From Epiperipatus broadwayi (lineage: Eukaryota > Animalia > Onychophora): DNA of 64,000 nucleotides. Where the stretch lies: assembly GCA_028023455.1 (NCBI GenBank), contig JAQFVV010000003.1, forward strand, positions 14,198,001 through 14,262,000. Reading direction: 5' to 3'. Both the position numbers and the translations under genes were made by a program. The notes below the pieces were generated by a model. That model was not told the origin of the DNA. It did no database searches and saw only the letters and a list, made by a program, of their open reading frames with translations. Of the stretch, positions 6,178 to 63,641 are shown piece by piece (positions within the stretch are counted from its first letter, which is position 1; each line of letters starts with the position of its first letter).

Positions 6178-6255
6178 GAATCTTCAGAACCTAAAGAAAA
6201 AAGGGCGCGAGGACGTCCTAGAGGCAGCAAGAATAAGTCTCCTTTAAAGACAAAG
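6178..6255 (+). CDS. HMGA: HMGA-family AT-hook protein, exon with the extended second-type AT-hook
   Basis: gtag|GAA...AAG|gttagt; 78 nt, phase 0-0; ESSEPKEKRARGRPRGSKNKSPLKTK, versus recalled HMGA2 exon 2 [29 protein letters not shown]. Confidence 0.93.
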
Positions 6256-21628: not shown

Positions 21629-21679
21629 AAACCAGAATCATCTGGGCCTCAAAAAGGACGAGGACGTCCAAAAAAACGG
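21629..21679 (+). CDS. HMGA: HMGA exon with the last AT-hook
   Basis: ttttag|AAA...CGG|gtaag; 51 nt, phase 0-0; KPESSGPQKGRGRPKKR, the same length as recalled HMGA2 exon 3 KAEATGEKRPRGRPRKW. Confidence 0.93.
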
Positions 21680-24222: not shown

Positions 24223-24800
24223 TATATATTACATTTTATATGTACAGGTGTGTGTAAGCCTGTACAGTGTATTCAAAATTTTAAGTTTTGATCATTGTCT
24301 AAGTTTGTTTGAATCAGACATTTTTAAAAAGTGCAAGAATCATGGCAAATTATAGTAATGTAAAAAGTGAATTAAGTGAAAATTGGTATTTAATTAAAAT
24401 GTCAAATTTTTGTAAATGCTTACTGTATCTTTATATAAATAGGAAAAAATGTAAATAATGATTAGTTCAATTATAAATCAGTTCTCAATTGTCCCAGTTC
24501 TTATGCTTTCGATACTACTACTTTTCTGTTGTAGCATTCATGTTAGAAGTCATAAATTTTTGGGTAATATTGTTTTGGTTGGTGTTAAACTGCTTGACTA
24601 AATATTAACCTATGCAATAATTTGTTCAGCTGTTATTTGATTGCAATTGGTTCTGCAAGTTGTATTAATCTTTAATGAATGCAGTCATCATTCTTGAGTT
24701 TTTTGATCTTTAATTTTAGTATGAGAGATAATTGAAAGATATGTGAAACGTTTATTTATTTAGAGTGCTAAGCACATTATAAGGTAAAACTGGAATAAAT

Positions 24801-24989
24801 TTAGTTTGCTCAACAGTCTATAAATCAAAACTGTTGTATATGAACATCTTAAATAATTCTCATCTCAGTTCCTTAACATTAACACTTTTTCTATTTTTAC
24901 TATTTTCTTAATTAAGGAACTGAGATGATCATCATTTAAGATGTTCATATACAATATAGTTTTGATTTATGGTCTGTTGGGCAAACTAA
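24801..24989. repeat. Long hairpin / small MITE (~76 bp arms, 35 bp spacer)
   Basis: 24801-24876 is a near reverse complement of 24912-24989. Confidence 0.85.
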
Positions 24990-25391
24990 CTTTAGTTCTG
25001 TTTTATCTAAAGATAATTATGATGTGCATGACTGATTATAGAATGTGTGAAGAGGGACTCTAAATAAACATTTTACATATCTTTTAATTATCTCTTATCT
25101 AAAATCAAAGTGTTTCATCAAAGAACAACAAAAACAAAAAGGTTGGAAAATTTTTCTCTTGTTTTGAAACTGACAATTTTCTATCAGATACTCCTTTTAT
25201 CATTTACTCAGGATTATTTCTGCAAAAAAGAAAATCTTGATATGCATTTCCATTTCTATGTATATGAATGCTATACCTATAAGTGTATATGTGCATATAA
25301 TAAATAATTTTGCTTATCATTTTTTGTAGTGCATTTTGAACCACTTCTAATCATTATTATAGCATAAAATAAATAGTTGTGGAACATTTAA

Positions 25392-25674
25392 AATAAATTC
25401 TTTAAATTTAGCACCATAGAGAACTATAGACATACTTCTGTTTTTTATTACCAATAATATTAGTATGTATAAATATATATATATAACTGCATGTGGAGTT
25501 AATTTTAATAATTGCCATTGAAAAATCTAATAAATTCTTTAAATTTAGCACCATAGAGAACTATAGATATACTTCTGTTTTTTATTATCAATAATGTTAG
25601 TATGTTTATAAATATATATATATGACTGCATGTGGAGTTAATTTTAATAAATGCCATTGAAAAATCTAATAAAT
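25392..25674 (+). repeat. Tandem duplication, ~137 bp x2
   Basis: aataaattctttaaatttagcaccatagagaactataga... starts at both 25392 and 25529. Confidence 0.9.
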
Positions 25675-25785
25675 CATATTTCATGCAGCTATAATTTAAT
25701 TTGTTATACAGTTAAGTTATATTTAAATATATGACATTTTGGATTAAAAATTATGTAACATGCTAATTTTCATATTTGTTTTTAG

Positions 25786-25881
25786 GAGACAGAGAGTAGT
25801 GACAAGGCTCCCGGCAGTGGCTCTGGTAGTGGATCAAGTGAAGAAGAAGAGGAGGAGGAGGAAGAAGAAGAAGAAAATTAA
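25786..25881 (+). CDS. HMGA: HMGA terminal coding exon (acidic tail)
   Basis: tttag|GAG...AAT TAA, phase 0; ETESSDKAPGSGSGSGSSEEEEEEEEEEEEN*, the acidic C-terminus typical of HMGA. Confidence 0.9.
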   Translation, partial: ETESSDKAPGSGSGSGSSEEEEEEEEEEEEN

Positions 25882-26871
25882 TAAGACTACTATGTTTTTT
25901 TAAAATGCCATCTCCTAACTACCAACTGCAATACTCGATCATGTAGGGTGGGTCAAATACTCAGTTACATAATTCACTCTTCTATTGTAGCTAGGTTTAA
26001 AAAAACAAAACAAAAAAAGAATTAGAGCAAAATATTAAAATTGACATACCTTACATGGTTCTGGTCTGCAGTAAACCTCATGGACCTGGCAGAATATACT
26101 GTCATAATCACATGACCAAGGGTGGCCATTACAATTTCCGCCATATTGGTGGGATCTTCGCCAGCATTTATTATTTTTTTTTGTATGTTTTTTACAAGTT
26201 ATTTTGTACATTACATCATTATTATTTCTAACCTGTTCTTGAAAGTTAGTCGCATCGTAAATTGTAATGTTGGTCCAGTGCTTGTGAGAACTTTGGTTCA
26301 TTCTTGTAAACTTCGCTGGCTTCCTGCCACATTACTATGGCTACAGATAAAACGGTTTACCATTGTTGACGTGATTTTGCCAGTTAGTTGGCTTAGGAAG
26401 GGAGGGGGGAGGGAATATATTTTCTAGCAGGAATTTTAAACTGCAAAATTCTTTTATATTTGTGTATATATATATAATTTACTTATACAGTTTCACATAA
26501 TTTTTCTTAATAACTAATTAATCTTGTAACCAAACTTAGTTATCTTTGTTTTTTTTTAATGTAATTAATTATTCAGGAAAACTATTATTAAGTGAACCAG
26601 TTCCAACATTAGATTCTGGAAGCATTGGGAACAATCTACATAGCTTTAATCAATGGTGCTACAGCGGAACGATAAACGGCCAACATCCATTTTACTCAGA
26701 CACCCATACACACATATATTTTTCAAAAGTCCTATATTATTATTGTTTTTTTAATATCGTGTAGACGTTGAAAGATTGGATTGTGTAGTATTTTGAAATA
26801 TTTTTGTATTTTATATTAAACTGCTTGATGAAATTAAAAAAAAAACAACAACTTGATTTGTCTAGTTTGAA

Positions 26872-26879
26872 CTACCTCA
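26872..26879 (+). promoter_or_regulatory. let-7 8-mer seed site in the presumed HMGA 3' UTR
   Basis: CTACCTCA in context gaACTACCTCAca. Confidence 0.7.
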
Positions 26880-27375
26880 CATAAAAACGTTCTTTAGACC
26901 CACGTGCATCTGTTCTTTCTAAAACTATCCAATATAACAGTAGAACCAGCTAATGGGTAATGCTGTGTTTTTAATTAGAAACATTTGTAGCTAACTTCTT
27001 TTATTATCTCAACCAATTTTCTGAATTTTTAAGTTAAGATCTCTAATAAAATTGTTCATGAAGGGTATTAGGATCTAAATTTTCAGTGATGTCAGCTCAT
27101 GGTTAAATTATTTGCATTTTAGATTTTTTTGTTTCCTACTTTGTATTTAAGAGACTGCTAGTGATATTTTGGAAGTTTGTTGTATTCATATTTTTACTTG
27201 TTTGTAATTCCATCATTAAAAAAAAAAAAAGGATATAAAAGCTGCCTATTTAGAAAACAAACTATCCAGTATGTCATTGTGCAGTACTTTGCTCCACTGA
27301 TGTTTACCATGTGACTTGTGCTTAATTGGAAATCATAGTTAGCTATTTTCCCACAAGGTGGCAGTATTTTGTTAA

Positions 27376-27383
27376 CTACCTCA
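27376..27383 (+). promoter_or_regulatory. Second let-7 8-mer seed site in the presumed HMGA 3' UTR
   Basis: CTACCTCA in context taACTACCTCAca. Confidence 0.65.
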
Positions 27384-27596
27384 CAGATGCATTATGTGAT
27401 GACATCCAGTTTGTTTTGTGTCCTTTTTTTTATACCGTTCTTGTATTGCATTCATCTGCCATCCAGGCATAATGTTCATTATTTGAGTACTATTTTAACA
27501 TATTCATTAAAACTATCATTAAAAAATTGTGTAATTCTTATATTTGAGATTTTTTTGTTTCGTATATAAAATTTATAATTTTCACCTTTAGTGTGT

Positions 27597-27602
27597 AATA
27601 AA
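27597..27602 (+). terminator. Candidate distal polyadenylation signal of HMGA
   Basis: AATAAA followed by U-rich sequence; a proximal AATAAA lies at 27045-27050. Confidence 0.4.
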
Positions 27603-28321
27603 AATTTTTATATTCCTTTTAAAAACAGCATTTTGTGTTGAAAATAATTTTTAAAATACTTGAATTTACTTAGCTTTAAATTCACTGCTGCTTTTTATGA
27701 TGATATAAATATATTTGCATATGATATTTGAATGGAAATTATTTGACCAATCTTAACGTTTTCATTTAAATTCTACTGATGATATATACTTCTCTAATGT
27801 ATATTTTTTAAATTAAAGATTTAAAATAATGGAAGCATTTTAATAACATAAGAAAATGTAAACTTTGAAGATATGTTCCATTACACTAAAATAGCAGCTA
27901 TTTATTCTTTTATTAGCCTTACCATCATGTACTTGGATAGATAAACTTTCAAAGATGTGTCTTTCAAGAGAATACAGTATGTATCTATAGCAATGGCTAT
28001 AGAAGCTTGCAAACTAATAAATATTACAATAAAAAAACAAAACCCTTTCCTCAGATAATGAAGAATATTAGGGGAGTAAACATTTACTTACTAATCAAAT
28101 TATCTACAGATTGGTGTTTTTGTTAGTTCTCTTACTTTCCTAGATATTTATTTACTAACCAATACTGGATGACTAGGTTGAAAGGGATATAAACTTGATA
28201 TCTGAAAAAAAAAAGTCTCATTCTAGCCTCAAACATGAATCTAAAAGCATAGCAGGAAAATAAATTATATTTTGAAGCTCTTATTTAAATTTGATGATCT
28301 AAATTATTTCTGAATGTTTAA

Positions 28322-37849: not shown

Positions 37850-39553
37850 AAAAATAATAAAATTTTTTTATTTTGCATATTTTCTCAAAATTTGGCTCAT
37901 ATGATCTTAAACTAATTCTTAAAACACAATTCCAAATGTAGATCCGATAATTGTGACCTATGTTTAGTTTTTATTGCATTTATGCAGGAAAATGCTGATT
38001 TGCACAAATATGTTGAACCAAAAAATGCATTGAAATATACAGCAACTTTCCAAATATTTGGATATTTATCCATGCTTACTAATATCCAGAAGCTTTCATT
38101 TGAAATTATTGATTTTAAATGTATATCACATTTAATATTTACTATTTCTTCTTCAAGCTCCACTGAATCTGTATATATAAATTTGTTTAATGTCATAGCA
38201 ATATCTTCAATATTGATTTTAACATTCAAAATTGTCAAATTCCTTTATGAGGAATATATTTTCAACATTTGTAGATTAGATTCTATCTTTAGACTCATCA
38301 GCCATATTTTTGAAATGTGTTAATTCTCAGTGCTTCTGTTGTATTACAAAACTTACTTAATTTTTCCTTGAATGACTTCAAAGTGCTTATCATAACTATT
38401 GTTTTACCTTGTAATTCTACATGTAAGTTTAGTTTTTCTGTAATATCACAGAAAAAGGTGAGATCAAGAAACCATTCTTTGTCATTCAGTTCTGGATATA
38501 AATCACTTTTAGTTTCCAAAAATGATCTTATTTGTGGTACAAGTTCTCTGAATCTGATTAAAAATTTTGCTCGACATAACCATCTTATGTCAGTATGTAA
38601 TAACAATTCACTATGTTCACTCTTGCATTCCTTTAGCAAATTCTGGAATTGATGATGTAACAAACTTTTTTATCTTATTTTATTAACAATTTTGAAGGCA
38701 ACATTCATAACAACATTACATTTCAATACTTTTGAACACAAGGCATGCTGATATATAATACGATAGTCCATAAAACTAGATATATCATTATCATTTTTAC
38801 ATAAAGTAAAACCAATTTTACTGCCAATCATTGCAGGAGCTCTGTCAATAGTTATTGATACTAATTTATGAATTGGGAAATTCGTTTGTACATTGTAATT
38901 CTTGAATAAACCATGAATTGGAATAATTGTTAATTTTTCTGAGTTGACATATCAAAAACCATGTGGATAAAAATACACAATTGTACAGTACCTGTATAAT
39001 CTGTAGATTCATCAAACTAGTAATAAAAAGTTACAATTGTTAATGTTTTTATGTAAAATCTCTTAAGATTTTGACTAATTTCTTCTGTCTTATGCATGAT
39101 TGTGTTTTCTGATAATGACATATTGTTAATAAAAGTCATTTCAGATTTATTTTTAAAATTTTCAAATAATATTTCAGCAGTTTTGATGAAGGCATCTTTC
39201 CATATTTGTCCATCTTCAAAGGGTTTATTGTGTTTAGTTAAGGTTTCAGCAAGTTGATGCAACCACAGCAATTTTTGAGCTTGTATTGTACTTGGTAAAT
39301 AAAATTTGTTGCATAGTGAGTTGTGTCTAGCTGTTGTAATTTAGCTTTTCTTAATGCAATGCCTAGTGGATAATCATCTTCATAATTTTTATGAGTGCAA
39401 AAATGTCTTTCAACATTGGCTTTCTTCGGTAAATCACATGCGCGCTGCAAATAATACATATACATGTTTTTCATTATAATAAAAAAATAATATTCCCATT
39501 CTTTACAATAGTGATGTTTTTATTTTTTTCACAATTGTACTTGGTTTATTCAT
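37850..39553 (-). pseudogene. Disrupted hAT transposase (GTF2IRD2/ZBED5/SPIN-like)
   Basis: ORF pieces LPKKANVERHF, LLLHTDIRWLCRAKFLIRF, DLTFFCDIT.KLN.LHVELQG and FGSTYLCKSAFS; putative ATG at 39553; multiple stops and frameshifts. Confidence 0.9.
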
Positions 39554-50200: not shown

Positions 50201-51476
50201 AAAGCTGCCATTGAATGTGGGATAGTATATGAAATTGTGTTAGATCATGTGCAAGCATTTAAAAATGTGAATGAGGTAGCGAATTCAAGTACATAGGTAA
50301 ATTCAGCAAAGCCACAGGCAATACAGAAGAATTTGATACAGAAGGCTAATGTCTGTTAATGCAAAAAGAAGAGCCATATTTGAAAGGCCATTTGTCAAAG
50401 GTTTGCAATAATGAAAGACAAATGTCAAAAGCTGATTTATCAACATGTAGTAAATCAAAAAGAGAAGTAGAAAAGAATGCCATGAACATGAGAATAATAA
50501 AGGAAAGTGAAGATATGCCAAAACTTTTAGAAGTTAATATTTGTGGACAAATAATAAAAATGTAAATAGATAGTGGGGCAGGTATAACACTCTTGTCGCT
50601 TAAAGGTTGGATAGCTATTGGCAAAAGAGCCAATAATAATATGCATATTAAAAAAACTAATTTAGTGGCAACAGATATTAATGGAAATAAGATTAAATAT
50701 TGAAGAAATGGTATTAGTACTTGTAAAAATGAATAGTCACAATAAAAATTTACTACTATATGCAATAATAAAATATATTAGTCTAATATTGAATGTAGTT
50801 GGTTCCAATCTCTCAGAATAAGCATTGGATGCTTTAAAAGTGCCAAAGTGAAAATTAATGGCCAGAATAAAATTTCAACTGCTATATAAGATGGGTCTGA
50901 CAAGATTAGTAAACTTAGAATGGATGAGAAATGACAAATGTTGCAAATTTGTAAAAAATTGCGTAAAATATAGATGGCCAAAGAAGCAACAAAATGATGT
51001 AGTACTACAAATTTGGAATGCTTAGGAAAGTGTGTCAATGTGTCACGAGAGTATTTTAATGACAGACAGTGTAGTAATTCCAACTGAGAAGAAATGTGTT
51101 CAACAACTGTTACACAAAGGACCCGGGAAATTGTTCAGATGAAGGAAGTACCTTGTTTGTATCAGTGGGGTCTGAAAATGACAAATTGTAAAAAAATGCC
51201 AAGCTTGTCAACAGTTAAAGAATATCAGCACTTCATGCCAAGTTCTGTTACAAAGAAAACTTTGGCAGAATTTACTTATGAAGTGCCAGATAAGGATGCA
51301 TATGTCTATACTAATTCCAGAAAAGGTTAAAATAAAGTATGCAAATTGTGAAATCATAAAATTTAGTTTAGGACAGATCATCTGGATTAAAGATACTTTA
51401 AGAAAAAAATGTATATCTGGGAAAACAAGCAGAATGCTATCTACCCAAATCATCATCATCATCATCATCATTATCA

Positions 51477-63437: not shown

Positions 63438-63641
<204 letters not shown>

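Follow-up and report, generated by a model that had tools for sequence, protein, structure and literature searches.

A stretch of 64 kb (the window) was analysed, which carries on its plus strand exons of a gene for an HMGA-like protein. Two exons with an AT-hook were recognized, both having consensus splice sites. The exon at 6178–6255 (78 nt, phase 0-0, bounded by ag and gt) encodes a hook with the core RGRPRGSKNKSP, and the exon at 21629–21679 (51 nt, phase 0-0, followed by gtaagt) encodes the next hook with the core GRGRPKKR. The 51-nt exon has the same size as exon 3 of vertebrate HMGA2. In the last coding exon (25786–25881, plus strand) a Ser/Gly stretch precedes 12 consecutive Glu residues, followed by Asn and the stop codon TAA at 25879–25881. 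The architecture is therefore one AT-hook per exon, with the last exon contributing both the acidic tail and a long 3′ UTR.

The only PDB match of the exon 6178–6255 was DNA-binding domain 2 of human HMG-I/HMG-Y (2EZD, E 0.0012), and the Pfam model AT_hook gave 13 bits for this exon, which is under its cut-off of 17.4. The nearest named ESM-Atlas clusters were HMGI-C and HMG-I/Y with a score of 0.81, a value to be taken as a lead only. The exons were searched individually, and a HMMER search of the whole library with AT-hook exon 2 returned only generic multi-AT-hook proteins with GRPKGSKNK repeats, which have no acidic tail. The window holds two AT-hooks with an R-G-R-P core versus three in the HMGA family. 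An exon for the first AT-hook was not found within the window, and the start of the gene including this exon presumably lies upstream of it. As judged from these sequence features, there is good but incomplete support for considering the gene an HMGA orthologue.

An exon-like open reading frame on the minus strand (63438–63641) is oriented convergently with the HMGA gene and gave no match in Pfam. Its middle part resembles human SMIM29, a similarity to be taken as a lead only, and human 6p21 harbours HMGA1 and SMIM29 in convergent orientation. If real, a SMIM29-like neighbour would represent microsynteny supporting orthology to vertebrate HMGA. The last HMGA intron contains a tandemly duplicated segment of about 130 nt (25380–25680, plus strand).

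Transcript-like coverage was taken from Logan contigs of runs labelled 'RNA?'. Four runs aligned to the window at ≥80% likeness, all of them from relatives: X1 (organism A), X9 (organism F), X10 (organism G) and X4 (organism C), the last being more distant than the other three. In a contig of X4 the sequence of exon 21629–21679 is joined directly to position 25786, with one synonymous change. This contig thus represents spliced cDNA, which confirms the last intron and its acceptor and documents transcription of the gene in a relative. Downstream of the coding exon it continues into the UTR and ends near position 25983. Further downstream, coverage comprises five contigs of the essentially identical organism A (X1; 26054–26398, 26606–27012, 27078–27230, 27254–27429 and 27426–27547), a single contig of 1008 nt from organism F (X9; 26579–27560 and 17 more letters) and two contigs from organism G (X10; 26746–27074 and 27045–27525).

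The contig ends of these three organisms are located at 27525–27577, short of an AATAAA motif at 27597–27602 (plus strand), and the main 3′ end probably lies about 20 nt downstream of this motif; contigs as such cannot prove transcript ends or strand. Based on the contigs of X1, X9 and X10, the 3′ UTR would span 25882–27620 on the plus strand (about 1.74 kb, 30% GC). None of the four runs yielded long contig pieces in the intron region 24500–25785 or between about 27670 and 28000, and beyond about 28000 only short, highly divergent, repeat-like pieces were seen. One contig of X1 opens with the Illumina small-RNA 5′ adapter followed by plus-strand sequence, which fits an RNA of plus sense. No single contig bridges the stop-codon side to position 26054, the gap (25984–26053) being located at an A-rich run; coverage gaps coincide with homopolymer runs.

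A 101-aa open reading frame within the UTR yielded no coding homologue. The possibility that the UTR harbours a known structured RNA was considered and rejected, as there was no Rfam match at E ≤1. The segment 26040–26420 (plus strand) forms an island of about 38–40% GC that is fully identical in organism A and lacks both a protein homologue and an Rfam match; it may be a conserved UTR element. Relative to the window, organisms A and G carry a 13-nt insertion, TTTCTAGATATTT, at position 27297. Thus, either the genome of the window has a small deletion in the UTR or it differs in strain or species from run X1.

The 8-mer CTACCTCA, which corresponds to a let-7 target site, occurs at 26872–26879 and 27376–27383 on the plus strand, and an exact-motif search of the 64-kb window revealed no other plus-strand copy. 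Both 8-mers are enclosed by an identical 12-mer, AACTACCTCACA, at 26870–26881 (site 1) and 27374–27385 (site 2) on the plus strand. No further copy of the 12-mer was found in the window when up to one mismatch was permitted. The two sites are located 991 and 1495 nt downstream of the stop codon. An initial annotation of the locus had reported both positions, the common 12-mer and distances of about 1.0 and 1.5 kb from the stop, all in agreement with our search and measurements. Its remark that no other copy of the 8-mer was noticed in the window holds for the plus strand only: a third copy is present on the minus strand at 50272, within a retroelement-like open reading frame, and is irrelevant to the UTR sites. 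A let-7 gene at 50272 was rejected as an explanation for this copy because let-7-like sequence is absent there, and no let-7 gene was found elsewhere in the 64-kb window.

The same annotation had assigned the two sites to the HMGA 3′ UTR and had called for transcripts spanning both of them. At the contig level the assignment was supported, since the contigs of X1, X9 and X10 cover 26054–27577 and X4 splices into 25786. Contigs of the relatives run through both sites and end near the AATAAA at 27597. Both sites therefore very probably lie inside an HMGA 3′ UTR of about 1.74 kb.

Each site offers a Watson–Crick match to nt 2–8 of let-7 and an A opposite nt 1. In the calculated duplex nt 1–9 of let-7 are paired at both sites, i.e. 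the 8-mer and an additional A opposite nt 9, at −14.1 kcal/mol in both cases. Neither site showed 3′ supplementary pairing or any pairing past nt 9 in this calculation. An A opposite nt 9 of a miRNA is a favourable context. The local AU content around the sites is 62–67%.

For statistical evaluation the UTR was defined as 25883–27620 (1738 nt, 30% GC). The expected count of CTACCTCA in this sequence is 0.009–0.013, and the probability of at least two copies under first-order Markov models of the UTR is 4e-5 to 9e-5. Dinucleotide shuffling of the UTR produced two or more copies in 4 of 20,000 cases. The earlier estimate of about 0.01 expected copies per 1.7 kb, with a pair being unlikely by chance, was thus accurate. 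If no motif is specified beforehand, a repeated 12-mer with at least five G/C occurred in 87 of 5000 shuffled UTRs (1.7%). AACTACCTCACA is the only repeated 12-mer with at least three G/C in the UTR, and all repeated 8-mers with at least four G/C belong to this motif. The 8-mers are flanked on either side by 2 nt that also agree between the sites, and the chance probability of this fourfold agreement is about 0.007; seed pairing alone does not account for these bases.

Segmental duplication as the source of the two sites was rejected, since the sequences on either side of the 12-mer cannot be aligned with each other and the sites are not contained in a larger direct repeat. The unrelated flanks indicate that the two sites are independent and do not derive from one duplicated block. 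In a panel of about 48 widely conserved miRNA seeds, let-7 alone has two 8-mers in the UTR. From the same panel miR-29, miR-9*/79 and miR-12 have one UTR 8-mer each, which is near chance expectation. The occurrence of two sites is real and non-random. As a separate observation, the single 8-mers for miR-9*/79 and miR-29 adjoin each other at 26642–26661 on the plus strand, preceding let-7 site 1 by about 220 nt, and their count is within chance.

At site 1 the relatives A, F and G all have the same 12-mer as the window, and the closest positions that differ are 26861 and 26889. The 12-mer of site 2 is unchanged in at least one relative, organism A, whose contig 27254–27429 has no differing letter. 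The contigs of organisms F and G span site 2 without an indel; the closest one, at 27397, is a deletion of 3 nt. Divergence is 0–5% for organisms A, F and G (about 5% for F and G), and at this level a neutrally evolving 8-mer would stay intact in about 70% of cases. The intact sites are thus compatible with function and at the same time not informative. Contig collections of metagenomes and prokaryote genomes contained no copy of a conserved 27-mer surrounding site 1.

Between the two sites lies a second AATAAA motif (27045–27050, plus strand), a possible poly(A) signal whose use would retain site 1 and drop site 2. Upstream of 27045 no AATAAA is present within the UTR. One contig of X10 ends at 27074, and X1 shows a gap at 27013–27077. 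Across this proximal motif contig depth, which is a poor measure, falls about 2.2-fold (from 21.4 to 8–10 in X1 and from 152 to 66 in X10). These data give a hint of a shorter HMGA isoform with site 1 only, generated by proximal polyadenylation.

We favour the view, with a probability of roughly 0.6, that the two 12-mers contain canonical let-7 8-mer target sites through which HMGA would be repressed. In such a scenario let-7 would rise late in development or on differentiation, and let-7-loaded Argonaute would bind each site via the seed (nt 1–9) without 3′ supplementary pairing. The bound sites would recruit deadenylation and decay factors, and HMGA levels would be lowered, as is known to happen with vertebrate HMGA2. 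Use of the proximal poly(A) signal may give rise to an isoform that carries site 1 only. We infer all three elements of this scenario, namely production of let-7 by the animal, binding of the sites and the ensuing repression. Since the LET-7 family goes back to the ancestor of the Bilateria, this reading assumes a bilaterian host that kept let-7. Regulation of HMGA by let-7 at this locus is a well-supported prediction from sequence and not a demonstrated interaction.

Alternatively, AACTACCTCACA could be an element for another trans-acting factor, either an RNA-binding protein or a small RNA matching across ACCTCACA, with the let-7 seed being incidental or partial. The identity of the sites extends 2 nt past the 8-mer on each side, which is not required by seed pairing and has the above-mentioned chance probability of about 0.007, and the duplex calculation gave no pairing past nt 9; both points agree with such a factor. 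Nevertheless, the complete 8-mer of the most conserved animal miRNA, found twice in the orthologue of its classic target, would then be a strong coincidence, and the A opposite nt 9 is generally known as a favourable context for miRNA sites. We know of no factor with the motif AACTACCTCACA and regard this explanation as unlikely. About as unlikely, if anything slightly more so, is that the 8-mers are non-functional and were found by looking for let-7 sites beside an HMGA gene. Many windows were scanned, a repeated 12-mer with at least five G/C appears in 1.7% of shuffled UTRs, and conservation is uninformative at 0–5% divergence. However, the probability of two or more let-7 8-mers in the UTR is only about 1e-4, none of the other tested seeds has two 8-mers, and the hypothesis is specific for HMGA, of which genomes hold few genes.

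The sites could also lie outside the HMGA message if the region 26054–27600 belonged to a separate or antisense transcript, or if the HMGA mRNA ended earlier. This would be in line with the lack of a contig across 25984–26053, with the lack of X9 coverage at 25836–26503 and with the fact that contigs reveal neither ends nor strand. We consider it improbable to a clearly greater degree than the two preceding explanations, because the X4 contig joins the coding exon to UTR sequence as far as about 25983, no AATAAA precedes 27045 and the gaps fall on homopolymer runs. Furthermore, the adapter orientation in X1 indicates plus sense, the contig ends match poly(A) signals of the plus strand and no coding gene was found in this stretch. 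Finally, the motif could not act via let-7 in a lineage devoid of this miRNA, be it non-bilaterian or the result of secondary loss. The LET-7 family arose at the base of the Bilateria (bioRxiv 10.1101/2024.12.01.626237), and some Caenorhabditis species have no let-7 (bioRxiv 10.1101/2020.11.10.377101). Against this stands that the nearest named relatives of the RTE element in the window are from arthropods, a brachiopod and a sea cucumber, and that loss of let-7 is rare, so that this appears the least probable of the explanations considered.

Vertebrate HMGA2 is an established target of let-7 (PMC3817382, PMC4856984). Full-text searches of the literature gave no report on let-7 and HMGA outside vertebrates, and HMGA is not mentioned in a study that dealt with miRNA targets conserved throughout the Bilateria (PMC2833159). 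The predicted regulation resembles that of vertebrate HMGA2 (and also HMGA1) by let-7 in using the same seed and more than one canonical site in the long 3′ UTR of a chromatin protein with AT-hooks and an acidic tail. A further likeness to HMGA2 is that one site is possibly escaped through proximal polyadenylation. In contrast to vertebrate HMGA2, which has seven sites, the UTR described here has only two, its host looks like an invertebrate and the regulation is a prediction from sequence. Moreover, they cannot be aligned to the vertebrate sites, and common descent of the interaction is thus unproven.

Regulation of lin-41/TRIM71 by let-7, the classic pan-bilaterian case, likewise involves a target that acts in developmental timing and whose 3′ UTR has two let-7 sites. 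In C. elegans lin-41 the seed match is imperfect and the sites require 3′ pairing, whereas the sites described here are perfect 8-mers without 3′ pairing. Imp/IGF2BP is an 'oncofetal' let-7 target common to protostomes and deuterostomes, with regulation in fly and mammals. The target gene is a different one, and this case is a precedent only for such links being potentially ancient. Non-seed pairing, which is relevant for the comparison with lin-41, is treated in PMC9161110, and a triangle of IGF2BP1, HMGA2 and LIN28B is described in PMC4856984.

Few miRNA–target pairs are known to be common to distant phyla, and let-7 with its stem-cell or 'oncofetal' targets is the main example. The initial annotation had proposed a possibly deeply conserved let-7–HMGA axis. 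An axis of this kind is plausible as a hypothesis only, the relatives compared here (0–5% diverged) being too close to bear on it. The more specific notion that the let-7/HMGA link is no vertebrate invention, having existed in an invertebrate lineage that may be protostome and perhaps, by extension, in the ancestor of the Bilateria, is put forward tentatively, as we consider it somewhat more likely to be wrong than right. If correct, HMGA would join the very short list of miRNA–target pairs found throughout Bilateria (lin-41, lin-28, Imp). The let-7/HMGA switch, which controls the self-renewal of stem cells and fails in human tumours, would then be older than vertebrates and could be tested in a simpler animal. 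If the link predates vertebrates, the identity of the sites over 12 nt would furthermore point to constraint beyond the seed.

Several other elements were observed in the window. For a gag-like open reading frame no homologues were found. The best match of the RTE open reading frame had 50% identity, with a mixture of arthropod, brachiopod and echinoderm names among its matches, and the taxa given by the Atlas were uninformative. The segment 46242–46540 has about 50% GC in a window of 27% GC; it contains no tRNA and no Rfam match at gathering scores. A degraded hAT/ZBED-like transposase, consisting of several broken open reading frames, is located on the minus strand at 37912–39474.
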